Source: Amphiscolops sp. MND2022 (Eukaryota). From it: a stretch of 64,000 bases of DNA. The notes beneath the pieces are model-generated. The model saw only the letters and a program-made list of their open reading frames with translations, searched no databases and was not told where the DNA came from. A program made the position numbers and the translations under genes. Of this stretch, positions 1 to 63,695 are shown piece after piece (the first letter of the stretch is position 1; each line of letters opens with the position of its first letter). Location of the stretch: positions 8,122,001-8,186,000 of the forward strand of contig OZ076410.1 in assembly GCA_964187785.1 (NCBI GenBank), given 5' to 3'.

Positions 1-198
1 TTGATTTGATCTCGACTTGTGGTGCAATGGTCCATTCTTCTTCATGTTCAACTGGTTCTTCATTGACTGAAATCTCAATGACTGGTTTGTCTTCTTCGCT
101 CGTATAGTCAATGAGGAATGGAGCCTCGAAGGAAACTTCATAAATGCCTTCATTTTTGATGACGACTGTTTCTCCGCTTTCTGTGAATTCCACTTCAG
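1..198 (-). CDS. Exon, type-A beta-rich module, copy 1 (truncated by window edge)
   Basis: Acceptor tttgttatag|CTGAAG at 199/198; matches exons 1200-1508 and 2505-2813. Confidence 0.85.
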   Translation of the reverse strand, partial: MKWNSQKAEKQSSSKMKAFMKFPSRLHSSLTIRAKKTNQSLRFQSMKNQLNMKKNGPLHHKSRSNQ

Positions 199-3100
199 CT
201 ATAACAAACATTCATCGATTTGAAATCTTCGGATGTTCAGATGAAATTAAGTTTATTTCTTGTTTCCTGAATGCTTCGAAAATGTAAACAAAGAACAAAA
301 GCTGCTACAAAGTTCGACTTTCAAAAAATTCTCACGTAACTTTCCTTTGCTACTAGACCTTCCATTTAGAAAACAGTTTTGAGTTTTCGAAACCGTTTCA
401 AGGCATAGTGAGACAATACATTATTAGCAAAAGTAAAGTGATACAGCGTAGTAATTGTTTTCAGCACCGACGAAGAAAATGATAGCAAAAGTTTCTGGGA
501 GGTGTTTCGACTACTAAATTTTACAAAAAACCCAAGCCTTGGTGCCACTGGTCTCAAAAACACTGAAGAATAGTTGAGAAATCTGAAAATTTTAGGAGCT
601 TGCACACCTTGTTCGAATTTGACGTGATGCACGTGATGCCTGTTGTTCTGCTCGTCCAATACATCAAGCACTAGACTTGGTGGTGCTTGGTCACTCAATG
701 AAGGCATCACCGATGCTTCAAACACACATGTGATAGTCGATGTCATTGATTTTTCGTCAATGATACACACAACATCAATCAACTCGACAGGCTTGTCATC
801 AAGCGTAGCAACGATTTCGACATTTTCCAAGTTTTTGTCGACCACGAATGGAACTGTGAGAGAGATCTTCTTGGTCTTCGGTTCGACAGCATCCAATACA
901 ATGGTTTCGTCGGACTCGGTCTCCTCCGGTTCTGTAGAAACACAACACGATCAGAATTTTCCGCTAGACTCAGATTTCTTCCAAGGTGCTGATGAAAATT
1001 TGTTTATTTGCTATTGACAACATAGTGGGAAAGTGATTCACTGCTAGTGTCCAAATTTGGGAACAAACAAGCATCAACAGCCACCTAATACGTCTATGAA
1101 CGTGTCACAGGAAACTTGTAGTACTTCCGCTTTTTGAAACGCAAAAGAAGTTTTTCAGAGACATGCATTCAGATCTCTAAATAGTAGTTAAACCATTACC
1201 TGATCTGACCACGACAAAGTGAACATGCTTGTGGTTCTTGTGGCTCAAATGCACACATACGCGTTCCACCTTTTTGTTCACTGGTTGAGTAAGCAAGGTT
1301 GTAAATTTGGTTGATTTGATCTCGACTTGTGGTGCAATGGTCCATTCTTCTTCATGTTCAACTGGTTCTTCATTGACTGAAATCTCAATTACTGGTTTGT
1401 CTTCTTCGCTCGTATAGTCAATGAGGAATGGAGCCTCGAAGGAAACTTCACAAATGCCTTCATTTTTGATGACGACTGTTTCTCCGCTTTCTGTGAACTC
1501 CACTTCAGCTATAACAAACGTTCATCAGTTTGAAATCTTCAGATGTTTAGATGAAATTAATTTTTTTCTTAGTTCCTGAATGCTTCGAAAAAGTAAACAA
1601 TGAACTAAAGCTGCTAAAAAGTTCGACTTTCCAGTTTCTCGCGTAACGTTTCTTTGCTATTAGACTTTCCGTTTTGGTAACGGTTTTGAGTTTTCGAAAC
1701 TGTTTCAAGGCATAGTAATACAATACATTAGCAGCAAAAGCGGTTCAACGGAGTAATTGCTTTCAAAAGCGACCAAGGAAAAGATTGCAAAAGTTTCTGG
1801 GAGGTGTTTCGATTACTAAATTTTACAAAAACCCCAAGCGTTGGTGTCACTGGTCTCAACACCACCGAAGAGTGATTGAGAATTCTGAAAAACTTAGGAG
1901 ATTGCACACCTTGTTCGAATTTGACGTGATGCACGTGGTGCCTGTTTTGCTGCTCGTCCAATACATCAAGCACTAGACTTGGTGGTGCTTGGTCACTCAA
2001 TGAAGGCATCACCGATGCTTCAAACACACACGTGATAGTCGATGTCATTGATTTTTCGTCAATGATACACACAACATCAATCAACTCGACAGGCTTGTCA
2101 TCAAGCGTAGCAACGATTTCGACATTTTCCAAGCTTTTGTCGACCACGAATGGAACTGTGAGAGAGATCTTCTTGGTCTTCGGTTCGACAGCATCCAATA
2201 CAATGGTTTCGTCGGACTCGGTCTCCTCCGGTTCTGTAGAAACACAGCAATGACCAGAATTTTCCGCTAGACTCAGATTTCTTCCAAGGCGCTGATGAAA
2301 ACTGGTTTTATTGCCATTGAGAACATAATGGGAAAGTGATTTACTGCTAGTGGCCAAATTTGGAAACAAACAAACATCAACAGTCACCTAATACGTCTAT
2401 GAACGTGTCACAAGGAGCTTGTGGTACTTTCGCTTTTTGAAACGCAAAAGAAGTTTTTCAGAGACACATGCATTCAGATCTCTGAATAGTAGTTAAACCA
2501 TTACCTGATCTGACTACGACAAAGTGATCATGCTTGTGGTTCTTGTGGGTCAAATGCACACATACGCGTTCCACCTTTTTGTTCACTGGTTGAGTAAGCA
2601 AGGCTGTAAATTTAGTTGATTTGATCTCGACTTGTGGTGCAATGGTCCATTCTTCTTCGTGTTCAACTGGTTCTTCATTGACTGAAATCTCAATGACTGG
2701 TTTGTCTTCTTCGCTCGTATAGTCAATGAGGAATGGAGCCTCGAAGGAAACTTCACAAATGCCTTCATTTTTGATGACGACTGTTTCTCCGCTTTCTGTG
2801 AACTCCACTTCAGCTATAACAAACGTTCATCAATTTGAAATCTTCAGATGTTCAGATGAAATTAATTTTTTTCTTAGTTCCTGAATGCTTCGAAAAAGTA
2901 AACAATGAACTAAAGCTGCTAAAAAGTTCGACTTTCCAGTTTCTCGCGTAACGTTTCTTTGCTATTAGACTTTCCGTTTTGGTAACGGTTTTGAGTTTTC
3001 GAAACTGTTTCAAGGCATAGTAATACAATACATTAGCAGCAAAAGCGGTTCAACGGAGTAATTGCTTTCAAAAGCGACCAAGGAAAAGATTGCAAAAGTT

Positions 3101-6100
3101 TCTGGGAGGTGTTTCGATTACTATATTTTACAAAAACCCCAAGCGTTGGTGTCACTGGTCTTAACACCACCGAAGAGTGATTGAGAATTCTGAAAAACTT
3201 AGGAGATTGCACACCTTGTTCGAATTTGACGTGATGCACGTGGTGCCTGTTGTGCTGCTCGTCTAATACATCAAGCATTAGACTTGGTGGTGCTTGGTCA
3301 CTCAATGAAGGCATCACCGATGCTTCAAACACACATGTGATAGTCGATGTCATTGATTTTTCGTCAATGATACACACAACATCAATCAACTCGACAGGCT
3401 TGTCATCAAGCGTAGCAACAATTTCGACATTTTCCAAGTTTTTGTCGACCACGAATGGAACTGTGAGAGAGATCTTCTTGGTCTTCGGTTCGACAGCATC
3501 CAATACAATTGTTCCGTCGGACTCGGTCTCCTCTGGTTCTGTAGAAAAATAATTAACTTCTGTCTGTGTTTTAAGGCTAACTTAGATTTCTGTCAAGGAG
3601 CTGAGGCGTTTTGATTTGTACGAGATTGTGAATATAACGAGGAAGTGATTCCTTGCACAACATTGGGAATATACAAATAGTAAACAATCTAGTTACTTCT
3701 TTTGTATAGACGAAGTCATTTCCATTCGATTTTCAGAGTCGATTTCCAGTTTTTGTCTGTCAAAGAAGTGTCATTGACTAACTTTTTCAGCATTGAGCCC
3801 TCGTTTCTCGTCCTTTATGATGGGAACGCGTTTGATTTTTCCGAACAAATTCGAAACGACGAAACAAATCCGACACGATTTTTTTCCAGTAGAAATATGT
3901 TTGCCAACATATGTTCCAACATAGATTTTTCCCGTTAGTAAACTTGACAGGTTGTATCTGAACACCAGTTTCTAATCAGTTAGCTACTATTATCATTCGA
4001 GCTACACTGTTCCTCTGAAAATTTCCCGAGGTAATTGCCCATGTTCTTGTGCTGGAGTGTTCAACCAGAGCAGACTCCATCATAGTCGAATTTCGTGAGA
4101 CAATTTGATCAGTTGAGTTTGAAATGCTATTTCCAGCCCGTCGGCTGCTAATCTCTCTGGAACCATTCGAGGTACTGGCATGATAAGGAAATGCTTTATC
4201 ATGGTGCACTCCCGGGGTCTTGCCGTGGAATCTCACTGAAGTAGCTACTTGGTGCATTTTGATCAGAACTAATCATTGATAAAATGAGACTTTTATCCAA
4301 TCCGACTAGAGTCTAGTTTTCTTCGAGACTTGCAGATGATTTATATCTGAATTTATTTGGTGTCAAACTAGTTTTCTTTCAGCTTCGAAAACGAAAATTT
4401 TTAGGGTTTCCTCCATTTTCTTTATTTTCACTACCAAAATAGATGACTTGAAACTAACCCAAAATAGATCTAACCGAAGCGGCAGAATGTTTTGCGTTTA
4501 TTACCGACACTTTTTTTAGTAAACGAAAAACGGTAAACTCTGGCAAAGTAGAAAAACCAGAGCCGCATGTGCGGCCAAGGAGTGGCTTGGGTCTTTTTCA
4601 TATGATTTTGATGCCATTGTGCTCGCCGGAGCACCTTTGGGTGTAAAATGACTGTGTAAAATTTTATGGAAATTATATTGACAGTTTTTGAGAAATTTGA
4701 AAGTTTCATTGAAATTTCGGAAGAAAAAAACGACACGATTGCATAAGTATTTGAATTTTTTTCCGATTTCCAAAAATCAACTCTGGTCAGTGAACTTCGA
4801 TTTCTGTCGAGGAGCTGATGACTTTTGGTTTATACGTGATTGCAAATATAATGAAAATGAGATTCTTTGCTAGAGCACAAATTTGGAAACATACAAACAT
4901 CAAAAACAATCTAAATACTACTATTGTTTTTGTTTTGGTTACCTGTTCCGATCTGTAAGTGATGTGTATGCTTGTGGTTCTTGAACACAACTGTAGTTGA
5001 AAAAACTTCATCAAATTCTGTTGGTGTGATCTTCAATGTTGTTGAGAAAATTGTCGACGCTGTGTCTGAGATGGGTTTCACATCCCACTGGTGGACCAAG
5101 ATTGTTTTTCCATTTCTTGTGGTTTCAACTGTCGGTTTTTCTTCCGTATCATCTTGTTGTACCAAAAATGGCACCACAAAGGAGACGTAGATGACACCAG
5201 CGTGTTTCTGACAAGTTGTCTTGCCACTTTCCGATAGCTGAGGCTCAACTGGAAAAGAAGCCAATTTTTACAATCATTTTTTCAGACCTCTGGGCGTTTG
5301 TCAAGGGTTCTACATTATTTCCAAAAATTCGTAGATTTTGTTTTGAATGTTGTCGGTCAATTTTTATGACGTCATTGTGGGCGCTTTGTATTTTGAAAGA
5401 TAAGATGAATAAAACGCAGTGGCTCTGCGATATTTTTTGTAGATTGTTGCAAGATGCCTGTATGAAGAACCAGAGCCGCATATGCGGTAAAGGAGTCGGC
5501 TTAGGTCTTTTTCCTTCTGACTCGCGAGTTTATTGAAACTGAACACATAGGACGATAATATGGTGTAGAAAGACTGTAGGAAATTTCGTTCGAATCGTAT
5601 GGACAGTGTTTGAGAAAATTGAAATAAATCGAAAAATGACTGTTTTTTGGCCAATTTTGGGCTAATTTTGGCTATGTTTCGCACATCCCAGCCATACGGC
5701 TTTGATACCATTGCACATATAGGACTCTAATATGATGTAGAATGACTGTAGAAAATTTTGTTCGAATCGTATGGACAGTTTTTGAGAAAATCGAAAACAA
5801 GTCGGAAAATGGCTGTTTTTTGACCATTTTTGGGCTAATTCTGGTTATGTTTCTCACATTCCAGTCATTCGATTTTGATCCCTTTGCGCATGCAGGGGCC
5901 TCTTTGGGTGTAGAATGACTGCAAAATTTTATAAAAATCGTATGGACAGTTTTTGAGAAATATGAAATTTTCATGGGAGGTCAGGAGAAAAAAGAACACA
6001 AAAACGACACGATTGCATAAGTAGTCGAAATTTTTTCCGACTCCTAAAAATCAGTCACCTCGTTCAGGGCGGACAAATATCAGGAACAGAACGTTACGAG

Positions 6101-9100
6101 AAGAAAACCCGGCAGAAAAATTTTTAAGGCTAAAAATCCTCGTCCTGTTCAACCAACTGGCTTTTAGTGTATTGTTGGACGCCTGTACACTAAACGAAGA
6201 TGTTGTATGAACAGAGCCCACTCGCCTATCCTCTTCGCCATTTTGTTGAACTTACGTTTCTATTAGTACTTTGAGGCCAGATATAACACTTTGAAGTTTG
6301 TCAAATCTTTCTTCGTTTTCGCGTTGAGTTTGTTAGCTCATAAAAAGTGATGGAGACATTCCTTGTCTTTGTGCCTCTTCAATGTTGCTACTATCTTCGA
6401 TTTCGAGATTATAGAGATTTTGTGATACGGTCGAATCAGATTTAGGAAATAATTGGAGCTATGAGTTTTCCGTTTCTAAGTTTTTTATGACAGAAGTCAC
6501 TCATCTAATATCAGTGTTTTACAGTCTACAGAAAAAGCGTATCAGTGTCAACAGTAACTTGCAATTTCGTCAAATGGTTGTCGGTTGTTAGCTTCGCGTT
6601 GGTACGTGGTAAGCCGCTTATCTTACCACCATGCAGCACTCTCTTTAGGTAACAAACGAAGTTATAATTACTATTGGTCACTTGACCGATTGTCATCGTT
6701 TATGTTTGTGGTCTACCAACCACACATCACGCGTTAAAGATAGTTTCGAATCAATTGGCCTAATTATGAGATGGATTTTAACGCGCATTGGATAACGTCT
6801 CTGAGCCATCGTTAGGTAGTTTCCGTTTAGGACTTGAAAAAGATGAAATTTGAGTGTTTAGAAATCAAATCGCTATATTTTAGAGTGGTAGGTGTAGAAG
6901 CGATGCTTTCACTGCAATTACATAGCAATTGAATTGCGAAAAAGAAATTCATCATTTGGACATCGTTTTCTACTCTAGTGTATAGCATCGTTATGGTAAA
7001 ATTCAGTAATCGATGAAGAAATTTCATCACTCCTCCATCGTCGATAATGAAATGGAAATCTTGTTTACATCGTCAGTATTTCAACACCAGCATTTAAAAA
7101 AGCTTTACAATAGGTGATGTATAAACGATGAGAAAATTCATCACTTTCACACGTTACATAAAAACTTTGTTAACTGCATCGCTCATGCGATGGGAAAGTA
7201 ACGAGATTGAAAATGAAGTCACGACAGTTCGTTGTGAGGCTCAACTGGCCGTCGTCTTACATTTTCATCGTTTTATCATCGGTTTGCTTAATTTCAGGTT
7301 TCTGGCTTTCCTCTTGTGATTTGTGTTCTGCCTGGGTTTAAGGACCCGTATTTAAAACATATGTGCACAGCTTTGATTCATTAGGCCCAAAATACACAAT
7401 ACATATCTCAAACTCAGGGTAGGGGATCAGAATAATAATGGAGAGTTGCGCACCATTTTGTTTTATCGCTCCCTATTGCCACTAATTAAGTACGTAAAAC
7501 ATATAATGTACATTATATATAGTAATACATCTATATTTCCATGACATTCATGCATGCTGACATGACATTCATACATGCGAACTTTTATTTATTGTGATTC
7601 ATGTGTACTGAAAGGTTTTTTGGAAATCACAGTGCTGACAAAAATTATGCTACTAGCGTCAATAACACCAAAGGAGACATTTTTTGTGGATTTAAAAACT
7701 GTGTAGAAGCCGCACAGTGTCGAAAAGTACGAAACCGGTGAGCCCTTTGGTCACAGAAAAAGCGAATCTTAACTGAAGGTATCGAGAACGAAACAAACAG
7801 ACTTTTCTGAATAAAAAACAAACCTTAAAGAGTTTGATTTCATTTGTCTTACGACATGGAAAATGAAAGTAATGAAGTTTGCAATGGAAGAACATTGCAC
7901 GTTGTGTTTGAATCGATTCTTGGGCATAAAGCGTGGAACCGGATGGAAAGACAAAGAACCGACGAAAAACAACTGAGATAGTAGTGACCTTCAATCTCAA
8001 ATTGCGCTGATTAAAATGTCCTCCTTGCCTTCATTCTAACCAGACCTGAGTTAAGTAGGTAATTACGTCAAGATTTTGGAAATGTCTCCCTCGATGACCA
8101 ACAACCCTGAAGAATGCTCGGGACGTTTTTGAACAGACCAGACGAAGAAAACAACGATCGGATGCGAACCCGTGAACAATAAAAGAAAAAATTGGAAACG
8201 GAAATAAAGCACGAAAGCGCCACTGAACGGAAAACAAGCGTAATTTGGACAAGATCTCGAAACGATCCCAATAAATTGACCGCAACACACTAGTAACCCT
8301 GTATTCTTTGGACTGATCATTAAATATCACTTAAAAACTAGTTTTTGAGATTGCAGTGTTTCCAACTGTGTGCCTTCACTCGATCAATTTCAGCTCGTTA
8401 AACCAGTTTATGCTTTCGATTCACAAGGTTCAAATACCATTATATCGACATTGTTATATGTCATTTTACCATTATATCTGCCAGTCAAAAGTTGCTCATA
8501 AGATTTTATGCGGAGAAAATTTGCGTTGAAATAGGGGCCTTTTTTATAGGATTTTAGCTTGTTCCAATATATCATAGTATCAAAAATAGGGTCTTTTTTT
8601 GCTGGAAGTGTCAAAGCTGTAAAGACATTCCTCCAATTCTTTACCTTATTTTCATTCAAGAACAAAATGTGCTTTCGTGTTGAGGGGATTCGAAACAAGG
8701 TGTACCTGGGGGGAATAAGTCGCATGGTCCAAAAATTGTAATGACCGCAAAATTGTGTATATTCTATATGACTAACCAACAACCAAGTTAATTTTGTGAA
8801 CGTATTTCACTCGTTTCGTTGTGACCGTCAAGGTGAATTCCTTAGAATGGGCAGTTTCAATTGTGTCCAAAACTTTCTCGATGTACGTTTGAGGCACTTC
8901 CGATGTGTCCAAATCACTCGAATCAGATGTGTGTGACCTTCTCACTTCGAAATCGACCAGTTTTCTGTCTTCGCTTTCCAGAGAAACAATCCAGTCATCT
9001 GTAAAGTTTGTATCATCCACATTCCAATCCTCGGTAACTTCCGCTGGAAGTTTGAACGTTAAAACATGTGTGGTGTTTCGCAAGACTGAAATGTCTTCCC

Positions 9101-54100: not shown

Positions 54101-57100
54101 AGGTGTGAAAACAAAAGCAGCGAATGTACTTCCGTACCAGTTCACATCTTAGCTTACTTTTAAAAAAGAATGTTATTCTTCAGCAGCGATTCTTGAAACT
54201 GTAGTTTACATTAAAAAATGACCCAAAAAGGCATAGATATAAAAATCGTTTTGAAGTCCAATAAAAGTACAATGGTGTCCTAAAAGCATATGCGACTTAA
54301 TTGCGTAAAATGTCACATTTCGTTGTCTGAAATGTCAAGAAAAGTAAAAGTTCCTGAGAATTTCATTACGATTACAAGGATTTTTTTAAAATTCCTACGA
54401 GCAGTTTTAAAAAGTTACAAAATCCAATTTTACAATCTAAATAACTTAAATAGCAGCTTTTCTATATTTTGATTAAGTTCCATTTGATGTTGTGGCCGAA
54501 GTTCAAGTAAAAGAAACTTGAAATCTCTGGGGAGGGGGAATGAGATCTAAAGAATAAGATCTAAATTAATAAGATCCAAAATTGTGACATGCTCAACTTC
54601 GAAAAGGGGAATAAGATCTAAAAATTTAGATCTTATTCCCTTCAAATCTTATTCTTTAGAGAAGGGGAATAAGATCTAAAATGCATTGATTTTAGATCTT
54701 ATTCCCTTTAGATTTTATTCCCGTCCTGAAATTTTAGATCTTATTCCCTTTAGATCTTATTACCTTTTTTGACTTTAGATCTTATTCTTTAAATCTTATT
54801 CCCCCCTCTAAAATCTCTGAAACATCATGTGCCGGTATTTTTGGGTTCCGAAAATAATCGAGGGGTTTATTCATATCTTTATACATGTAATTTCAAATTT
54901 CTTCATGCAAAATTTTAGATTTATTTCTTTTTTTTTCGAAGTAACCCGGAAAACAAAAAACACCATGCCATGGCGTTATAGAAAAGCTGCTATTTCATTT
55001 ATTTAGATCGCATTTATTCAGAATGCATTCAAGAGAAAGAGGGGAATTTCGATGCTAAAACTACCGAGTAAATTTTTGAATTTTGGCTGTGGGAATTAAA
55101 ATCAGGGGCTGTCAAAAATTAATTTTTTCACAACAATCAATTATAGGGTTTACCAATCAATTAATTGTAATTGCTAGTTCGTAACAATCAATTATTGCAA
55201 TTAATGGGTGCCTTTTGTTACGAGTTCTTAATCCCAGAACTTCTTATTTATCTTAAGAAAAATAAAGAGTGAACGTTTAGACTGATTTAAAAGATCGTAT
55301 CGAATAAAAGCTTGCAGTGAATTCGTCAAATTTGTCTGCAACCGATGTTACGTAATTTCCTGTTCGTAGGAATGATAATTTCATCTCTGAAAAAGAGCTC
55401 AGTGGCGTCGCAGTACATAGGTATTGCTGCACCAAATAATTGGCAATTAATTGGTAATCTGAAATCAATTAATTGTAATTGTGAAATGGCTGAAATCAAT
55501 TAATTGATTGCAATTAATTGCAATGTAATTGGAAGCAATTAATTTTTGACAGCCCCTGATTAGAATAAACCAATGAAATTTTAGACGCAAAAACTAATCA
55601 GCTAATGAGATTTGAGAATCGTTGGGTTTTGAGAACTGCTTAGTCGCATTCTTTTAGCTCAGCACTGTACAAAAAGAAGGTGGATAATTTCTTCTTCTAC
55701 GAGTGAAATAAATAGTCAAACTGTTTTTCAATTAAAGAATTGAAATAAATTATAACAGATGGATTTTTTCCATGAGTCCCCTCATCAATCTAATTCCCCT
55801 TCCCCTTATAAATGCTCAGTCAGCGGAATTGCCTGAGTAGCGGAAGTTATGAAGCAATCCAATTAGACTGGTTCATCCATGGTGAAATGTTCTCAGTTAG
55901 GCGGTCACCTGATCTCAGAAATTTAACCGATCGAATTTCAGCACCTTTCTCGTTCTCACTCTGTTTCCAAATAAGGAGACTAGTTGCCATAAAAATATAG
56001 AATATGAAGACGAAGTAGAATAAATGGTCACAGAAAACCCGAATTCAATTCACACATTCATAAAGGGAAGGGGACTTAGATTGATGAGGGGATTCATGGA
56101 AAAGATCCATGTTATTATTTATTTCAATTCTTTAATTGAAAAACAGTTTGAATATTTATTTCACTCGTAGAAGAAGAAAATATTCGGCCTTGAGCTTATA
56201 CCACAGGAAGTCACTATTAATCGAACCTTTTTTAAAGAACCGATGACTACGCTGTTTTAGCATCGTGGATCAGTAACTTAGATATTAAGGACTTCGGAAT
56301 ACACAAATTGTAGAGATGCCACAAAACCATTTAAGTAGTTTTACCCAAGCATTAATTCAATTTCTGACTGATATTATTCAGCACCGTATATGACATTTTG
56401 ACCAAAAAATTTATCATTTTTTTAAAATCATTTCTGCTACAAAAATTAATAGGGGGTGGGTTTGATGAACAGGGGAATTAACATGGAAGATCCATCGTAT
56501 TGACGCCCTGAAATTTCTATGAAGCGTCTCCTAAGATTAGTCTGTTGATTACCTTTTTCCAAGCCAAATAGAAACAACTTACCTTCAATATCAAAACCAC
56601 TTTCTTCGGTAGCTGCTTCGAAAGTAGAAGTGCTGGCAACGCCTTGAAACTCTTCAACGAAAGTTTCTCGAACTTTTTGCTCAAACATTTCTTCAACGTT
56701 ATCATCGATTACTGATAATTCCACTTCCTTATCATCCGTTTCCTCTGAACTAAAAACAACTTCAGCTGCATTCTGGTCTTGTGCCACTTCACTTGTGGTC
56801 ATGTCTACCTCGAAGTCCTTTTCACTGGTCTCAACTTCTTCGGCGCCGACTGCAATCTGCATTTCTTCAGTGGCATCCTCTCGTGTCACTTCTTCTCCAA
56901 CTTCAATCACCTCCTCCTTCTTTTCTTCTGAAACGCATATTCAAATATCTTTTGCTTGGTTTTGCAAACATGAGGTCGAACATGGGCCATTATTCTGACA
57001 AGACCGCGAGCATCAGCTCCGAGGTATGACATGCAACATTGATGGCTTCTCAAAATATGGAAGATCTTCGATTTGACATGTGCTGGACCCCACAAAAAAA

Positions 57101-60100
57101 ACAAAAGTAGTTTTTGATGAGATTCACACAATTATCGAAACACCGATACTGCAAAACAAAACACTTAGTTATCCCTTAGCACCTGGAAACAGCAAGAACT
57201 AGAACCTAAAACGTAGTAATAAAGACAAAGGATTCCATTCTACAAACCTTGTTCGACATCAGCTTCTTCAAAGGTGCTTTGAACGTTGCTGACTGTATTG
57301 GCGCTTTCTGAATCTTCCATGATTTTCAACTGGAACTGTTCTTCGTTGTCCGTCTCTTCAGAGAAGGTATCCATGTCAACCATGACATCCTCTGCTGCAG
57401 TGTCACTCTTCTGGCTACCACTCTCTACATCAAGATCGACGGATTCTTCGTCTTGTGCCACTTCACTTGTGGTCATGTCTACCTCGAAGTCCTTTTCACT
57501 GGTCTCAACTTCTTCGGCGCCGACTGCAATCTGCATTTCTTCAGTGGCATCCTCTCGTGTCACGTCTTCTCCAACTTCAATCACCTCCTCCTTCTTTTCT
57601 TCTGAAACGCATATTCAAATATCTTTTGCTTGGTTTTGCAAACATGAGGTCGAACATGGGTTATTATTCTGACAAGACCTCGAGTGTCAGCTTTGCGGTA
57701 TGACATGCAACATTGATGGCTTCTCAAAATATGGAAGACCTTCGATTTGAAATGCGCTGGATCCCACAAAAGAAACCAAAAGTGGTTTTTGATGTGATTC
57801 AAACACTTATCGAAACACCAATACCGCAAAATCAAAACACTTGGTTATCCCTTATCACCTGGAAACAGCAAGAACTAGAACCTAAAACGTAGTAATAAAG
57901 ACAAAGGATTCCATTCTACGAACCTTGTTCGACATCAGCTTCTTCAAAGGTGCTTTGAACGTTGCTGACTGTATTGGCGCTTTCTGAATCTTCCATGATT
58001 TTCAACTGGAACTGTTCTTCGTTGTCCGTCTCTTCAGAGAAGGTATCCATGTCAACCATGACATCCTCTGCTGCAGTGTCACTCTTCTGGCTACCACTCT
58101 CTACATCAAGATCGACGGATTCTTCGTCTTGTGCCACTTCACTTGTGGTCATGTCTACCTCGAAGTCCTTTTCACTGGTCTCAACTTCTTCGGCGCCGAC
58201 TGCAATCTGCATTTCTTCAGTGGCATCCTCTCGTGTCACGTCTTCTCCAACTTCAATCACCTCCTCCTTCTTTTCTTCTGAAACGCATATTCAAATATCT
58301 TTTGCTTGGTTTTGCAAACATGAGGTCGAACATGGGTTATTATTCTGACAAGACCTCGAGTGTCAGCTTTGCGGTATGACATGCAACATTGATGGCTTCT
58401 CAAAATATGGAAGACCTTCGATTTGAAATGCGCTGGATCCCACAAAAGAAACCAAAAGTGGTTTTTGATGTGATTCAAACACTTATCGAAACACCGATAC
58501 TGCAAAATCAAAACACTTAGTTATCCCTTAGCACCTGGAAACAGCAAGAACTAGAACCTAAAACGTAGTAATAAAGACAAAGGATTCCATTCTACGAACC
58601 TTGTTCGTTGTCAGCTTCTTCAAAGGTGCTTTGAACGTTGCTGACTGTATTGGCGCTTTCTGAATCTTCCATGATTTTCAACTGGAACTGTTCTTCGTTG
58701 TCCGTCTCTTCAGAGAAGGTATCCATGTCAACCATGACATCCTCTGCTGCAGTGTCACTCTTCTGGCTACCACGGCTACCACTCTCTACATCAAGATCGA
58801 CGGATTCTTCGTCTTGTGCCACTTCACTTGTGGTCATGTCTACCTCGAAGTCCTTTTCACTGGTCTCAACTTCTTCGGCGCCGACTGCAATCTGCATTTC
58901 TTCAGTGGCATCCTCTCGTGTCACTTCTTCTCCAACTTCAATCTCCTCCTCCTTCTTTTCTTCTGAAACATAGATTTAAATCTTTTGCTTGGTTTTGCAA
59001 ACATGAGGTCGAATCGAACATGGGGCATTTTTTGACAAGATTTCGAGCATCAGCTTCTAGGTATGAAATGCAACGAAGAACTCTTCTGAAGAAACGGAAG
59101 ACCTTCGCTTTGAAATGTGCTGGATCCCACAAGTGTTTTTTGTTGAGATTCGAGCATTTATCGAGAAACCGAATCCGCAATATAAAAACATCTGGTTGTC
59201 TCTTATCACGTAAAAAAACAACAACAAAAAAAAACAAAACACGAAACTAAAATGTAGTTAAAAAGACACAGGATTGTTTTCTGTGAACCTTGTTCGTTGT
59301 CAGCTTCTTCAAAGGTGCTTTGAACGTTGCTGACTGTATTGGCGCTTTCTGAATCTTCCATGATTTTCAACTGGAACTGTTCTTCGTTGTCCGTCTCTTC
59401 AGAGAAGGTATCCATGTCAACCATGACATCCTCTGCTGCAGTGTCACTCTTCTGGCTACCACTCTCTACATCAAGATCGACGGATTCTTCGTCTTGTGCC
59501 ACTTCACTTGTGGTCATGTCTACCTCGAAGTCCTTTTCACTGGTCTCAACTTCTTCGGCGCCGACTGCAATCTGCATTTCTTCAGTGGCATCCTCTCGTG
59601 TCACGTCTTCTCCAACTTCAATCACCTCTTCCTTCTTTTCTTCTGAAACGCATATTCAAATATCTTTTGCTTGGTTTTGCAAACATGAGGTCGAACATGG
59701 GTTATTATTCTGACAAGACCTCGAGCGTCAGCTTTGCGGTATGACATGCAACATTGATGGCTTCTCAAAATATGGAAGACCTTCGATTTGAAATGTGCTG
59801 GATCCCACAAAAGAACCCAAAAGTGGTTTTTGTTGTGATTCAAACAATTATCGAAACACCAATACCGCAGAATCAAAACACTTGGTTATCCCTTATCACC
59901 TGGAAACAGCAAGAACTAGAACCTAAAACGTAGTAATAAAGACAAAGGATTCCATTCTACGAACCTTGTTCGACATCAGCTTCTTCAAAGGTGCTTTGAA
60001 CGTTGCTGACTGTATTGGCGCTTTCTGAATCTTCCATGATTTTCAACTGGAACTGTTCTTCGTTGTCCGTCTCTTCAGAGAAGGTATCCATGTCAACCAT

Positions 60101-63100
60101 GACATCCTCTGCTGCAGTTTCACTCTTCTGGCTACCACTCTTTACATCAAGATCGACGGATTCTTCGTCTTGTGCCACTTCACTTGTGGTCATGTATACC
60201 TCGAAGTCCTTTTCACTGGTCTCAACATCTTCGGCGCCGACTGCAATCTGCATTTCTTCAGTGGCATCCTCTCGTGTCACTTCTTCTCCAACTTCAATCA
60301 CCTCCTCCTCCTTTTCTTCTGAAATGCATATTCAAATATCTTTTGCTTGGTTTTGCAAACATGAGGTCGAACATGGGCCATTATTCTGACAAGACCGCAA
60401 GCATTAGCTCCGAGGTATGACATGCAACAAAGATGGCTTCTAAAAATATGGAAGACCTTCGCTTTGAAATGTGCTGGCTCCTACAAAAGAAACCAAAAGT
60501 GGTTTTTGTTGTGATTCAAACAATTATCGAAACACCAATACCGCAAAATCAAAACACTTGGTTATCCCTTATCACCTGGAAACAGCAAGAACTAGAACCT
60601 AAAACGTAGTAATAAAGACAAAGGATTCCATTCTACGAACCTTGTTCGACATCAGCTTCTTCAAAGGTGCTTTGAACGTTGCTGACTGTATTGGCGCTTT
60701 CTGAATCTTCCATGATTTTCAGCTGGAACTGTTCTTCGTTGTCCGTCTCTTCAGAGAAGGTATCCATGTCAACCATGACATCCTCTGCTGCAGAGTCACT
60801 CTTCTGGCTACCACTCTTTACATCAAGATCGACGGATTCTTCGTCTTGTGCCACTTCACTTGTGGTCATGTCTACCTCGAAGTTCTTTTCACTGGTCTCA
60901 ACATCTTCGGCGCCGACTGCAATCTGCATTTCTTCAGTGGCATCCTCTCGTGTCACTTCTTCTCCAACTTCAATCACCTCCTCCTTCTTTTCTTCTGAAA
61001 CGCATATTCAAATATCTTTTGCTTGGTTTTGCAAACATGAGGTCGAACATGGGCCATTATTCTGACAAGACCGCAAGCATTAGCTCCGAGGTATAACATG
61101 CAACAAAGATGGCTTCTAAAAATATGGAAGACCTTCGCTTTGAAATGTGCTGGCTCCTACAAAAGAAACCAAAAGTGGTTTTTGATGAGATTCACACAAT
61201 TATCGAAACACCGATACTGCAAAATCAAAACACTTAGTTATCCCTTAGCACCTGGAAACAGCAAGAACTAGAACCTAAAACGTAGTAATAAAGACAAAGG
61301 ATTCCATTCTACGAACCTTGTTCGACATCAGCTTCTTCAAAGGTGCTTTGAACGTTGCTGACTGTATTGGCGCTTTCTGAATCTTCCATGATTTTCAACT
61401 GGAACTGTTCTTCGTTGTCCGTCTCTTCAGAGAAGGTATCCATGTCAACCATGACATCCTCTGCTGCAGTGTCACTCTTCTGGCTACCACTCTCTACATC
61501 AAGATCGACGGATTCTTCGTCTTGTGCCACTTCACTCGTGGTCATGTCTACCTCGAAGTCCTTTTCACTGGTCTCAACTTCTTCGGCGCCGACTGCAATC
61601 TGCATTTCTTCAGTGGCATCCTCTCGTGTCACTTCTTCTCCAACTTCAATCACCTCCTCCTTCTTTTCTTCTGAAACGCAGATTTAAATCTTTTGCTTGG
61701 TTTTGCAAACATGAGGTCGAACATGGGGCCATTATTCTGACAAGACCGCGAGCATCAGCTTCGAGGTATGACATGCAACAAAGATGGCTTCTCAAAATAT
61801 GGAAGACCTTCGCTTTGAAATGTGCTGGCTCCTACAAAAGAAACCAAAAGTGGTTTTTGATGAGATTCACACAATTATCGAAACACCGATACTGCAAAAT
61901 CAAAACACTTAGTTATCCCTTAGCACCTGGAAACAGCAAGAACTAGAACCTAAAACGTAGTAATAAAGACAAAGGATTCCATTCTACGAACCTTGTTCGA
62001 CATCAGCTTCTTCAAAGGTGCTTTGAACGTTGCTGACTGTATTGGCGCTTTCTGAATCTTCCATGATTTTCAACTGGAACTGTTCTTCGTTGTCCGTCTC
62101 TTCAGAGAAGGTATCCATGTCAACCATGACATCCTCTGCTGCAGAGTCACTCTTCTGGCTACCACTCTTTACATCAAGATCGACGGATTCTTCGTCTTGT
62201 GCCACTTCACTTGTGGTCATGTCTACCTCGAAGTTCTTTTCACTGGTCTCAACATCTTCGGCGCCGACTGCAATCTGCATTTCTTCAGTGGCATCCTCTC
62301 GTGTCACTTCTTCTCCAACTTCAATCACCTCCTCCTTCTTTTCTTCTGAAACGCAGATTTAAATCTTTTGCTTGGTTTTGCAAACATGAGGTCGAACATG
62401 GGGCCATTATTCTGACAAGACCGCAAGCATTAGCTCCGAGGTATAACATGCAACAAAGATGGCTTCTAAAAATATGGAAGACCTTCGCTTTGAAATGTGC
62501 TGGCTCCTACAAAAGAAACCAAAAGTGGTTTTTGATGAGATTCACACAATTATCGAAACACCGATACTGCAAAATCAAAACACTTAGTTATCCCTTAGCA
62601 CCTGGAAACAGCAAGAACTAGAACCTAAAACGTAGTAATAAAGACAAAGGATTCCATTCTACGAACCTTGTTCGACATCAGCTTCTTCAAAGGTGCTTTG
62701 AACGTTGCTGACTGTATTGGCGCTTTCTGAATCTTCCATGATTTTCAACTGGAACTGTTCTTCGTTGTCCGTCTCTTCAGAGAAGGTATCCATGTCAACC
62801 ATGACATCCTCTGCTGCAGTGTCACTCTTCTGGCTACCACTCTCTACATCAAGATCGACGGATTCTTCGTCTTGTGCCACTTCACTCGTGGTCATGTCTA
62901 CCTCGAAGTCCTTTTCACTGGTCTCAACTTCTTCGGCGCCGACTGCAATCTGCATTTCTTCAGTGGCATCCTCTCGTGTCACTTCTTCTCCAACTTCAAT
63001 CACCTCCTCCTTCTTTTCTTCTGAAACGCAGATTTAAATCTTTTGCTTGGTTTTGCAAACATGAGGTCGAACATGGGGCCATTATTCTGACAAGACCGCG

Positions 63101-63695
63101 AGCATCAGCTTCGAGGTATGACATGCAACAAAGATGGCTTCTCAAAATATGGAAGACCTTCGCTTTGAAATGTGCTGGATCCTACGAAAGAAACCAAAAG
63201 TGGTTTTTGATGAGATTCACACAATTATCGAAACACCGGTACTGCAAAATCAAAACACTTAGTTATCCCTTAGCGCCTGGAAACAGCAAGAACTAGAACC
63301 TAAAACGTAGTAATAAAGACAAAGGATTCCATTCTACGAACCTTGTTCGACATCAGCTTCTTCAAAGGTGCTTTGAACGTTGCTGACTGTATTGGTGCTT
63401 TCTGAATCTTCCATGATTTTCAACTGGAACTGTTCTTCGTTGTCCGTCTCTTCAGAGAAGGTATCCATGTCAACCATGACATCCTCTGCTGCAGTGTCAC
63501 TCTTCTGGCTACCACTCTCTACATCAAGATCGACGGATTCTTCGTCTTGTGCCACTTCACTTGTGGTCATGTCTACCTCGAAGTCCTTTTCACTGGTCTC
63601 AACTTCTTCGGCGCCGACTGCAATCTGCATTTCTTCAGTGGCATCCTCTCGTGTCACTTCTTCTCCAACTTCAATCACCTCCTCCTTCTTTTCTT
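1..63695 (-). CDS. Giant multi-exon repetitive acidic protein, partial at both ends; about 14,400 codons in 22 exons within the window
   Basis: All long minus-strand ORFs are bounded by AG acceptors and GT donors in phase 1. Exon lengths (354/363/345/8265/4419/24198/366/306/324/309) are multiples of 3, so they join without stops. ORF-track starts at GTG/TTG fall inside exons or in the intron just upstream. Family not recognised. Confidence 0.85.
608..931 (-). CDS. Exon, type-B beta-rich module (108 codons), copy 1
   Basis: Acceptor tctacag|AACCGG; donor AAG|gtgtgc; 324 nt, phase 1-1; EPEETESDET...NRHHVHHVKFEQ. Confidence 0.8.
1200..1508 (-). CDS. Exon, type-A beta-rich module (103 codons), copy 2
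   Basis: Acceptor gttatag|CTGAAG; donor CAG|gtaatg; 309 nt, phase 1-1; AEVEFTESGET...KNHKHVHFVVVRS. Confidence 0.87.
1910..2233 (-). CDS. Exon, type-B module, copy 2
   Basis: Same splice signals as 608-931; 324 nt. Confidence 0.8.
2505..2813 (-). CDS. Exon, type-A module, copy 3
   Basis: Acceptor gttatag|, donor |gtaatg; 309 nt. Confidence 0.87.
3215..3538 (-). CDS. Exon, type-B module, copy 3
   Basis: Acceptor atttttctacag|AACCAG; donor AAG|gtgtgc; 324 nt. Similarity to the other copies ends just beyond the acceptor. Confidence 0.82.
4943..5248 (-). CDS. Exon, divergent type-A-like module (102 codons)
   Basis: Acceptor cttcttttccag|TTGAGC; donor CAG|gtaacc; 306 nt, phase 1-1. Aligns by eye with type A (ESG-x-T, VSF-x-x-PFL, EKP, W-x-x-x-P, KNHKH-x-H). 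Confidence 0.87.
5540..6055. repeat. Intronic tandem units of about 172 bp (about 2.5 copies), related to sequence at about 4540-4800
   Basis: GTAGAAWGACTG...CGTATGGACAG at 5565, 5737, 5910; GAGCCGCAT-TGCGG and AAAACGACACGATTGCATAAGTA shared with the 4540-4800 copy. Confidence 0.7.
8777..9142 (-). CDS. Exon, distant beta-rich module (122 codons)
   Basis: Acceptor attttgccag|GTCCCG; donor TTG|gttagt; 366 nt, phase 1-1. VLTFKLP and C-terminal KYVHKI resemble motifs of the other modules. Confidence 0.8.
10195..34392 (-). CDS. Giant exon (about 24.2 kb, about 8,066 codons) encoding the 114-aa repeat array
   Basis: Uninterrupted ORF 10106-34438. Acceptor cattttacag|CTCACC at 34393/34392 is clear. 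Donor AAG|gtagtg at 10195/10194 keeps phase 1 but is tentative; the frame otherwise reads to a stop at 10106. Confidence 0.85.
10420..33990. repeat. Coding tandem array, 342-bp unit, about 69 copies
   Basis: Exact 342-bp spacing of shadow ORFs; no frameshifting indels over 23.5 kb. Confidence 0.97.
34781..39199 (-). CDS. Exon (4,419 nt) encoding about 32 copies of a 43-aa Glu-rich repeat
   Basis: Acceptor tgtttttcag|TTTCCC; donor CAA|gtaagg; phase 1-1; open frame. Confidence 0.9.
34900..39090. repeat. Coding tandem array, 129-bp unit, about 32 copies (QPEEQIDVK type)
   Basis: GATTC anchor recurs from 35020 to 39019, i.e. 31 x 129 bp. Confidence 0.95.
39534..39635 (+). other. Degenerate tRNA-derived (SINE-like) fragments in an intron
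   Basis: A-box-like GGTGGCTCAGTCAGG at 39534, B-box GTTCGAACC at 39563 and a second GGGTTCGAACC at 39613; no complete cloverleaf. Confidence 0.35.
40681..48945 (-). CDS. Exon (8,265 nt): unique N-segment, about 51 copies of a 43-aa Glu-rich repeat, unique Leu-rich helical C-segment
   Basis: Acceptor tttctaacttgggttctag|CTTTGG with a CTAAC branch-point-like motif; donor CAG|gtaaga; phase 1-1; open frame. Confidence 0.88.
41590..48185. repeat. Coding tandem array, 129-bp unit, about 51 copies (QAEEQIDIK type)
   Basis: Anchor spacing about 41597 to 48175, i.e. 51 x 129 bp. Confidence 0.95.
49308..50084. mobile_element. MITE-like non-autonomous DNA element, TA-flanked (Tc1/mariner-type target site)
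   Basis: TIR CCCGGGTCGACCCTC / GAGGGTCAACCCGGG with TA on both sides; inverted subterminal TCTTGGCAAGATCTTGCCAAA; many AAGATCTTG motifs; no transposase ORF. Confidence 0.72.
50288..51034 (-). mobile_element. Possible truncated retroelement 5' end (186-aa ORF with coiled-coil-like segment, preceded by a TG...CA-bounded stretch of about 100 bp)
   Basis: ATG-initiated intronic ORF unrelated to the host protein, no phase-1 splice signals noted. Amphipathic stretch EIQAWTETFEQKNNDRIMEMREEMENK. TGTAAGG...TGTCACA at 51034-50932. No zinc knuckle, protease or RT visible, so assignment is inference. Confidence 0.4.
52025..52189. repeat. Hairpin, 69-bp arms (4 mismatches), 27-nt loop
   Basis: 52025-52093 is the reverse complement of 52121-52189. 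Confidence 0.92.
52191..52340. repeat. Spacerless palindrome, 75-bp arms (5 mismatches), centre GTTCA|TGAAC
   Basis: Inner 46 bp perfect (TAACCGGATG...CATCCGGTTA). Confidence 0.93.
53275..53819. mobile_element. Second hAT-like MITE nested in the 52897-53880 element
   Basis: Degenerate TIR AAGAGATGTGAAA / TTTACACCTCTG; flanks TTTGTGAG and ATTGTGAG (7/8 match); internal ATATTG repeats. Confidence 0.6.
53553..53704. repeat. Spacerless palindrome of about 152 bp inside the nested MITE, centre AAACGG|CCGTTT
   Basis: Arms start and end with AGAGCTCT; few mismatches and one small indel. Confidence 0.92.
54530..54810. mobile_element. Short foldback element with 9-bp TSD (Mutator-like target length)
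   Basis: Termini GAGGGGGAAT / ATTCCCCCCTC; internal GAATAAGATCTAAA motifs in both orientations; AAATCTCTG at 54521-54529 and 54811-54819. Confidence 0.7.
55103..55558. mobile_element. hAT-like MITE
   Basis: Perfect 22-bp TIR CAGGGGCTGTCAAAAATTAATT; flanks ATTAAAAT / ATTAGAAT (7/8); same AATTAATTGC subterminal motif as the 52897 element. Confidence 0.85.
55688..56179. mobile_element. Foldback/MITE-like element with inverted arms of about 125 bp
   Basis: 55688-55813 (TTTCTTCTTCTACGAGTGAAATAAAT...) is inverted at about 56054-56179; no convincing TSD. Confidence 0.7.
56583..56927 (-). CDS. Hybrid acidic exon (115 codons) closing the 675-bp array
   Basis: Acceptor tttcag|AAGAAA; canonical donor AAG|gtaagt; first half matches the array exons, second half unique. 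Confidence 0.9.
57248..57601 (-). CDS. Acidic array exon (118 codons)
   Basis: tttcag|AAG ... CAAG|gtttgt; 354 nt, phase 1-1. Confidence 0.85.
57924..58277 (-). CDS. Acidic array exon (118 codons)
   Basis: tttcag|AAG ... CAAG|gttcgt; 354 nt. Confidence 0.85.
58600..58962 (-). CDS. Acidic array exon (121 codons; in-frame 9-nt duplication giving ESGSRGSQK)
   Basis: Same splice signals; 363 nt; the insertion preserves frame. Confidence 0.85.
59289..59642 (-). CDS. Acidic array exon (118 codons)
   Basis: tttcag|AAG ... CAAG|gttcac (variant donor); 354 nt. Confidence 0.8.
59965..60318 (-). CDS. Acidic array exon (118 codons)
   Basis: tttcag|AAG ... CAAG|gttcgt; 354 nt. Confidence 0.85.
60641..60994 (-). 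CDS. Acidic array exon (118 codons)
   Basis: tttcag|AAG ... CAAG|gttcgt; 354 nt. Confidence 0.85.
61317..61670 (-). CDS. Acidic array exon (118 codons)
   Basis: tttcag|AAG ... CAAG|gttcgt; 354 nt. Confidence 0.85.
61992..62345 (-). CDS. Acidic array exon (118 codons)
   Basis: tttcag|AAG ... CAAG|gttcgt; 354 nt. Confidence 0.85.
62667..63020 (-). CDS. Acidic array exon (118 codons)
   Basis: tttcag|AAG ... CAAG|gttcgt; 354 nt. Confidence 0.85.
63342..63695 (-). CDS. Acidic array exon (118 codons)
   Basis: tttcag|AAG ... CAAG|gttcgt; 354 nt. The window ends in sequence matching the donor-proximal end of another unit's intron. Confidence 0.85.

Follow-up and report, generated by a model that had tools for sequence, protein, structure and literature searches.

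A repeat-rich giant gene region of Amphiscolops sp. MND2022 that probably encodes the central spring of a titin/connectin-type protein

A 64,000-nucleotide (nt) stretch of the genome of Amphiscolops sp. MND2022 (contig OZ076410.1 of GenBank assembly GCA_964187785.1, forward-strand positions 8,122,001 to 8,186,000; hereafter the window) carries a giant reading frame built from tandem repeats, which is probably the repeat-rich central spring region of a titin/connectin-type gene, of the sallimus and I-connectin kind. We favor this assignment because immunoglobulin (Ig) domains of the I-set class lie in the flanks on both sides, because Ig domains and acidic repeats occur together in single exons, and because titin I65-I70 is the best match of one of these exons among solved structures. 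The units in the window are orphans in sequence, and the kind of protein to which they appear to belong is known. An earlier note, made from the letters of the window, had described one reading frame of more than 14,400 amino acids (aa), open at both ends and spliced across 21 predicted junctions, and had read it as a lineage-specific giant elastic, spacer or scaffold protein. The observation is confirmed, and the interpretation is partly supported. Coordinates below are window positions, and values with a plus or minus sign lie beyond the window edges, where 120 kb of flank was taken in on each side.

All coding features of the window are on the minus strand, both in the open reading frame (ORF) listing and in the output of Tandem Repeats Finder. 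The raw open blocks comprise 8,117 codons at 34459..10109, two blocks of 129-nt units at 49003..40670 and 39221..34734, and eight short blocks between 9.2 kb and the window start; each has a polypyrimidine-AG acceptor at its head and a GT donor at its tail. With canonical sites picked at each block, 22 exons join across 21 junctions into 14,411 codons with 0 stops, in agreement with the size and junction count of the earlier note. AG precedes all 22 exons, and GT follows every exon except the last, which runs off the window start. Every exon length is divisible by 3 and the introns are in phase 1 throughout, so that each exon is symmetric (phase 1-1). The model consists of 11 acidic exons (ten of 118-121 aa and one of 115 aa), 2 exons with 43-aa units, 1 helical exon of 24,198 nt, and 8 beta modules, and it is open at both ends, with 7 further 118-aa exons upstream and 11 further beta modules downstream. 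Introns of 7-10 kb with transposon fragments separate some of the blocks. The exons, in the order of the gene, are as follows.

63342..63695, minus strand: acidic exon of 118 aa, the first of eleven in the window (AG acceptor, weak donor AAG|GTTCGT, 354 nt, phase 1-1)
62667..63020, minus strand: acidic 118-aa exon
61992..62345, minus strand: acidic 118-aa exon
61317..61670, minus strand: acidic 118-aa exon
60641..60994, minus strand: acidic 118-aa exon
59965..60318, minus strand: acidic 118-aa exon
59289..59642, minus strand: acidic 118-aa exon, donor GTTCAC
58600..58962, minus strand: acidic exon, 121-aa variant (363 nt)
57924..58277, minus strand: acidic 118-aa exon
57248..57601, minus strand: acidic 118-aa exon
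56583..56927, minus strand: last acidic exon, diverged, 115 aa, strong donor GAAG|GTAAGT
40681..48945, minus strand: exon of 2,755 codons with about 270 unique aa, 51 copies of a 43-aa acidic unit (array 41576-48178) and a unique tail (Glu+Asp 37%, Pro+Glu+Val+Lys [P+E+V+K] 47%)
34781..39199, minus strand: exon of 1,473 codons with about 33 copies of a related 43-aa acidic unit (array 34893-39100; Glu+Asp 41%, P+E+V+K 52%)
10195..34392, minus strand: single exon of 8,066 codons with a unique head of about 135 aa, 69 copies of a 114-aa unit predicted to be helical (array 10452-34007) and a unique tail of about 100 aa
8777..9142, minus strand: diverged beta module, predicted Ig-like, 122 codons, with an ortholog in a diverged relative and conserved splice sites
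4943..5248, minus strand: beta module, predicted Ig-like, 102 codons, with an ortholog in the diverged relative
3215..3538, minus strand: predicted Ig-like module of type B, 108 codons
2505..2813, minus strand: predicted Ig-like module of type A, 103 codons
1910..2233, minus strand: predicted Ig-like module of type B
1200..1508, minus strand: predicted Ig-like module of type A, the copy that was folded (predicted local distance difference test [pLDDT] 85)
608..931, minus strand: predicted Ig-like module of type B
1..198, minus strand: predicted Ig-like module of type A, cut by the window start

The diagnostic domains lie just outside this model. Pfam I-set matches above the cut-off were found in 16 exon pieces upstream and 2 downstream, all outside the window, and a hidden Markov model (HMM) of the gene's own Ig domains, run over 304 kb, gave about 25 matches, all on the minus strand, and 0 on the opposite strand. 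The upstream I-set exons lie about 31 to 99 kb past the window end (coordinates +95k to +163k), and the downstream ones about 26 to 39 kb past the window start. Thus, annotation of the flanks, which the earlier note had proposed as a check, places I-set domains on both sides and on the same strand only. The earlier note saw no I-set domain because of where the window edges fall, and its suggestion that the protein is lineage-specific and stands outside the Ig-based giants, which was drawn from that absence, is not supported.

The exons beyond the window join the two kinds of sequence physically. Going upstream, the seven further 118-aa exons are followed by further acidic exon families, a 1,918-codon open block, and then I-set exons to about +163,000; the 1,918-codon block begins with an I-set domain that passes directly into Glu-rich repeats of about 50 aa. 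Going downstream, the 11 beta modules are followed by a 6,000-codon (18-kb) exon at -16,540 to -34,539, which contains a Glu-rich block (59% P+E+V+K), PEVK-like repeats of about 48 aa (50% P+E+V+K) and two I-set domains, and a partial I-set exon lies at about -38,800. With I-set domains and Glu-rich or PEVK-like repeats in the same exons, long segments of the extensible type share one encoded polypeptide with Ig domains. Against solved structures, the two-Ig exon matched titin I65-I70 with an E-value of 1.4e-30, compared to 2.7e-13 for the best non-titin chain. In addition, cysteine is entirely absent from 3 of 8 sampled Ig domains, and in most of them the canonical disulfide pair is incomplete or missing. 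Ig domains of intracellular muscle proteins mostly lack the disulfide cysteines, and the domains found here appear to be of that kind. Near its head, the 6,000-codon ORF also holds ten W-x-R-x-R-[E/D] motifs at residues ~360-1170, spaced by about 45-50 aa with some larger gaps and without a Pfam match; this run might be an array of binding sites.

The gene, on the minus strand, reaches from about +163,000 to about -39,000, a length of at least about 200 kb, and would encode about 27-30 thousand residues if every exon were used. Between its ordinary Ig domains lie about nine repeat systems that are unrelated to one another, at least four of them in the window. The four systems counted in the earlier note are all present in the window, but they do not make up the whole protein, which also holds I-set Ig domains outside it. 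FN3 domains, which accompany Ig domains in some giants of this group, gave no PF00041 match near C2:8.0-8.3 Mb among the best 150 scored candidates in the genome. Ig-FN3 super-repeats of the vertebrate titin, twitchin and projectin type were not found near the locus among these candidates, and no search aimed at a kinase was made there. Elsewhere, C9:50187159-50339407 (plus strand) carries a dense cluster in which at least 19 Pfam fn3 matches, all in one orientation, fall within 150 kb; this cluster probably represents the giant Ig-FN3 gene of projectin/twitchin type in this genome, distinct from the gene described here.

The largest element of the window is the array in the 8,066-codon exon. 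Tandem Repeats Finder reported a 342-nt unit in 68.9 copies at 10452-34007 with 96% matches and 0% indels, and a FLEQHPEE motif recurs 65 times at exact multiples of 114 residues. Each 114-aa unit is made of three 38-aa sub-repeats. The reading frame of the array is maintained: the 187 distinct variants among 68 units produced 0 in-frame stops, compared to 7.3 expected, the other five frames contain 3-17 stops, and no indel was found over 23.5 kb. The variants between copies comprise 132 non-synonymous and 55 synonymous changes, compared to 130 and 49 expected, and these neutral proportions fit young homogenised copies or a spacer-like role. Identity is 96.4% between neighbouring units and falls to 93.6% at long range, and some multi-unit blocks are duplicated at 100% identity, which implies that unequal crossing-over is ongoing in the array. 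Within it, on the minus strand, the blocks at window ~23732-25099 and 20996-22363 are nearly the same, units 26-28 being 100% and unit 29 being 99.7% identical to their counterparts among units 34-37, and many pairs among units 58-67, in the array tail, are 99.7-100% identical. Such near-identical units point to block duplication or gene conversion in the very recent past, and copy-number errors of the assembly would be hard to see there. Plus-strand ORFs of 2,102 and 2,604 aa within the array were considered as genes and rejected, since in other units the same frames are interrupted by stops about as often as expected.

Across the 1.07-Gb genome, the helical unit was located 69 times and never outside this exon. 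No relative was found among 1.84 billion representative proteins in an exhaustive HMMER search with 1,200 aa of the exon, no sequence match was found in the PDB, nothing usable was returned from the ESM Atlas, and four units scored within the 8,117-aa query of a word-indexed search gave no match. Five HMMER matches (best E 5e-7, 26% identity) were to STAND NTPase, LRR and ankyrin proteins and were read as matches of repeats or composition. Likewise, the Pfam matches on the array (MT0933_antitox, Peptidase_M9, MxiC_C and others) are sums of weak repeats in which no single stretch passes. AlphaFold2 (AF2), run without an alignment on three units, predicted three long amphipathic helices per unit, one for each 38-aa sub-repeat and each kinked at a conserved His-Pro, at a low confidence (pLDDT 48). 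Both a spectrin-like three-helix bundle and a helical solenoid are possible for the 114-aa unit.

The beta modules number 19 in the gene (8 in the window and 11 downstream), and a search of the genome found these 19 places and no others. They fall into two alternating types, A and B, and diverged single copies, with 12-32% identity. AF2 with an 11-sequence alignment modeled a sandwich of about eight strands (pLDDT 85; predicted template modeling score 0.75). In VIA-align this model aligned 85-94 of 102 residues to titin, obscurin, Dscam and other Ig domains at Z 7-8.8, values only just above the stated background of the tool of 7-8, with a match list that is uniformly Ig. The top structural matches were titin N2A Ig81-83 (Z 8.8), titin M1 (8.2), titin I65-70 (8.0) and obscurin Ig58 (7.7), with 85-91 of 102 residues aligned; non-muscle Ig domains (sDscam, PD-L2, RPTP-mu and CD28) scored equal to titin. 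Foldseek agrees weakly, with E of about 4e-4 to obscurin-like-1, titin M1 and MyBP-C. We conclude that the modules have a predicted Ig-like beta-sandwich fold. Their sequences did not reveal this. No Pfam match was found, the signature of Pfam I-set (PF07679; Trp in strand C, D-x-G-x-Y in strand F) was not found, an 11-sequence profile found no sequence match in the PDB, and comparison with the gene's own I-set profile gave an hhalign probability of 0.3% (E 0.2). Module A returned nothing usable from the ESM Atlas, and module B alone had no match in the JGI metagenomes. The search of repeat units by HMMER and Foldseek that the earlier note had recommended thus yielded no sequence relatives, and gave the beta modules a predicted Ig-like fold by structural match.

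A His cluster closes each of the Ig-like modules. For module A, H86 and H89 lie in the second-last strand and H92, H94 and H96 alternate along the last, so that the side chains of these three should point to one side. Among 11 diverged modules taken from two species, H96 and P26 do not vary. The cluster could be a candidate metal- or pH-sensitive site.

Conservation of this region was assessed in two European Nucleotide Archive (ENA) metagenome contigs found with the beta-module profile, one a near copy and one a diverged relative (ENA contig ERZ26859043:ctg83783). The near copy, on a 78-kb contig (ENA ERZ25074608), is 96.6% identical to and collinear with window 19017..7457, or 11.5 kb including an intron. 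It carries an ORF of at least 5,258 aa over the same 342-nt array, compared to 8,117 in the window, so that an independent assembly also keeps the frame open; the shorter ORF could mean that haplotypes or sister species differ in copy number, or that the frame is broken upstream. The diverged relative has no match to the window at the DNA level, and its module order is the same: two single modules, nine A/B pairs and the next single module. Synonymous sites between relative and window are saturated (proportion of synonymous differences, pS, ~0.73), and the ratio of non-synonymous to synonymous divergence (dN/dS) is 0.08-0.26 across five module pairs. Purifying selection on the beta modules is therefore clear. 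The donor G|GTAGTGAA of the helical exon is kept at the end of the giant exon of the relative, and the in-phase splice sites around the next module are kept as well. At the position of the helical exon the relative has a called ORF of 9,702 aa, and its last 204 residues, the part on which the motif comparison is based, contain two copies of the same motif type, LLANxFxxEHP and xxYFxxVHPEE. In the same contig, the intron after the beta-module array holds a run of small ORFs that extends over more than 15 kb on one strand, with a DNA_pol_B_2 gene among them; this run looks like a Polinton/Maverick-type or virus-like insertion.

The acidic part of the window consists of an exon-plus-intron unit of about 676 nt, present in eleven copies between 56.4 and 63.7 kb, and of the 129-nt units reported by Tandem Repeats Finder at 34893-39100 and 41576-48178. 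The 118-aa and 43-aa units contain 35-41% Asp+Glu, carry a net charge of about -30 per 100 residues, and have almost no Trp or Cys. Their P+E+V+K content is 40-52% with 0-4% Pro, and the 43-aa arrays have 47-52% P+E+V+K with only 2-4% Pro. No genuine Pfam match was found for the acidic units among the ten window pieces scanned. The stop test has little power on the 43-aa arrays, where about 2.5 stops were expected and 0 were seen.

Several known proteins resemble this gene in part. Drosophila Sallimus or D-Titin (sls, including kettin) is encoded by a 110-kb gene and has 17,903 aa, N-terminal tandem Ig domains and 56 Ig domains in all; its PEVK regions have 1,240 and 5,065 residues with 58.5% and 52.4% P+E+V+K, and it has no FN3 domain or kinase, the A-band part being in the separate projectin gene (PMC2185597). 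The gene studied here is similar in its tandem I-set domains, its acidic or PEVK-like blocks of 47-59% P+E+V+K, and its FN3-rich locus on another chromosome, with no FN3 match nearby among the scored candidates. In contrast to D-titin, its spring units have no detectable known sequence, about 7,900 residues are predicted to be helical instead of disordered, nineteen modules are Ig-like in predicted fold only and lack the I-set signature, and the gene is about twice as long. Crayfish I-connectin is reported to combine Ig domains with several unrelated, lineage-specific extensible repeat regions and to reach micrometres in length in giant sarcomeres. The gene studied here is alike in combining Ig domains with lineage-specific repeats, and it differs from the SEK and PEVK-type repeats described for the crayfish protein. 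TTN-1 of C. elegans reportedly has long tandem repeats and predicted coiled-coil or helical regions as candidate elastic elements and would thus be a precedent for helical springs in invertebrate titins; unlike the present gene, it is said to have FN3 domains, a kinase and short repeats. We know of no 114-aa unit repeated 69 times in one exon in TTN-1, and the exhaustive search found no similarity between TTN-1 and the helical exon.

The I-band of vertebrate titin is made of tandem Ig domains, N2A and PEVK with E-rich motifs. Its I65-I70 region is the most similar to the Ig exon found here, the modeled beta modules can be superposed on Ig domains of titin N2A (Ig81-83), M1 and the I-band, and symmetric phase-1 exons allow length to be tuned, as they would here. 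By contrast, the A- and M-band part of vertebrate titin was not found here, and the spring chemistry of the present units is acidic and proline-poor. The 114-aa unit also resembles the repeats of spectrin, dystrophin and nesprin/MSP-300 in length (114 compared to ~106-120 aa) and in its three predicted long amphipathic helices, but unlike a spectrin repeat it has no Pfam or PDB match, and its three helices would be copies of one 38-aa motif with a His-Pro kink. The likeness to titin, sallimus and connectin drawn in the earlier note proved apt, with acidic low-complexity stretches beside serial beta-sandwich modules and I-set domains in the flanks. Its proposal of a giant elastic-type protein made from novel parts stands as to the orphan units and the elastic-type layout, and fails in so far as it set the protein outside the Ig-based giants.

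A number of points weigh against the titin/connectin-type assignment or parts of it. It draws on layout and on Ig matches, and Ig domains alone are promiscuous markers. A 3,180-aa downstream piece gave only Ig-level matches in the word-indexed search, for example to hemicentin, and weakly. The acidic units in the window, being poor in proline, are not classical PEVK. Between helical copies, the open frame is visibly constrained and the residues are not, and at pLDDT 48 the picture of a helical bundle or solenoid is weak. We infer a single transcript, the usage of its exons and expression in muscle from the genomic sequence. The gene may run on past the exons mapped at both sides, and FN3 or kinase domains might still lie at the locus, as the FN3 scoring covered the best genome candidates only.

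The main rival to a single 14,411-aa stretch is isoform diversity and not another family. One locus could give many products, as Drosophila sls does with kettin, zormin and others, through cassette exons or through isoforms with internal promoters or poly(A) sites, such that no protein carries all 14,411 codons and most transcripts skip much of the arrays; we regard this as possible but on balance doubtful. It is favored by the phase 1-1 symmetry of all exons, any subset of which could be skipped in frame, by the weak AAG|GTTCGT donors of the 118-aa exons, and by the known behavior of titin and of sls (PMC2185597). However, the blocks of 8,265, 4,419 and 24,198 nt are single exons that skipping could not shorten, and the frame is open over all 69 helical units. 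That the arrays are untranslated, being either satellite DNA whose frames are open by accident or a pseudogene in decay, is very improbable. The 93-100% identity of the units and their recent block duplications, the near-neutral ratio of non-synonymous to synonymous variants, and the long ORFs on the opposite strand are what such DNA would show, but it would not explain 0 stops and indels over 23.5 kb in one frame with stops in the other five, or the canonical in-phase splice sites at both ends, which are conserved in a relative with saturated synonymous sites. We therefore rejected satellite DNA with chance ORFs on the open frame, the confinement of the unit to this exon, the conserved borders and the 9,702-aa ORF kept by the relative at the same place.

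Two further alternatives accept a translated giant and place it elsewhere. It is improbable that the window belongs to a self-standing, lineage-specific giant composed of novel parts only, in a gene apart from the neighbouring Ig exons and outside the titin group. The acidic 118-aa exons continue upstream toward the exons that join Glu-rich repeats to I-set domains, the beta modules continue downstream to the exon with two I-set domains, one strand holds for all of these exons and one intron phase for all window exons, and the opposite strand had 0 Ig matches in 304 kb. These observations argue against a separate gene even though the window units have no sequence relatives in Pfam, the PDB, the 1.84 billion representatives or the ESM Atlas, the beta-module and I-set profiles do not align with each other (hhalign probability 0.3%), and some blocks are set apart by the 7-10 kb introns with transposon fragments. 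The clustered histidines on the last hairpin of each beta module, together with the very acidic repeats, are reminiscent of marine-invertebrate structural proteins that coordinate metals, a likeness that serves as a lead only. A structural giant that is secreted or otherwise extracellular, serving in the matrix, in adhesion or as a tether and combining Ig-like modules with His clusters and with acidic repeats that bind metal, was weighed against an intracellular muscle protein and found quite unlikely. This general likeness and the weak hemicentin match of the downstream piece speak for it, and the N-terminus might carry a signal peptide; but most of the Ig domains lack the disulfide cysteines nearly always kept in extracellular Ig domains, titin is the best solved match by 17 orders of magnitude in E-value, and no EGF, VWA or other extracellular domain was seen in the pieces scanned.

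If the gene is of the titin/connectin type, its product would work as a multi-stage molecular spring or ruler in muscle. In gene order, a run of I-set domains, most of them without disulfide cysteines, would lead into long Glu-rich or PEVK-like stretches and then into further Ig domains. The acidic 118-aa and 43-aa units would be disordered, self-repelling entropic springs like PEVK, and the weak donors and symmetric phase of the acidic exons would let exon skipping tune their length. The array of 69 114-aa units would be built either as a rod composed of small helical bundles or as a helical solenoid that lengthens when loaded. The 19 Ig-like modules would first straighten, and their unfolding would need high force. 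A bolder proposal is that the 114-aa unit is a folded module, that 69 of them in one exon are a new alpha-helical tandem spring that replaces PEVK in its main extensible role, and that the His cluster on the Trp-less Ig-like modules could give metal- or pH-dependent stiffness; we offer it tentatively and think it rather unlikely.

Introns of the window contain other repeated sequence. Within the 7.6-kb intron that separates the last acidic exon from the first exon with 43-aa units, an ATG-started ORF of 186 aa occupies window 50291-50848 (minus strand). It belongs to a high-copy family (150 scored matches and 5,590 candidates, at 60-69% identity) with copies often paired at a distance of about 14.6 kb, a spacing that suggests terminal repeats on a large mobile element, and it is not part of the titin-like gene. 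In the intron between beta modules, window 3600-4600 and 5549-5960 contain a dispersed repeat for which 81 matches, at 65-90% identity, were reported across many chromosomes, as well as a 173-nt tandem repeat of 2.4 copies; both were read as ordinary transposon debris.

The locus illustrates that a fixed window can mask a gene family, the diagnostic domains here lying 31 kb past one edge and 26 kb past the other. A gene of this kind is likely to be fragmented or overlooked by automatic annotation, and the exon model, the Ig flanks and the orthologous contig provide a starting point for annotating it. Its interest lies in the orphan 114-aa array, in the unrecognisable Ig-like modules, and in their position, which is kept across deep divergence. 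Passive stiffness and resting length in muscle are governed by titin-type proteins, whose spring segments vary by lineage and evolve fastest. The locus would be an extreme case, with 69 nearly identical helical units in a single 24-kb exon and with Ig-like modules that escape recognition by sequence, and if the helical array is folded and load-bearing, it would represent a new type of spring.

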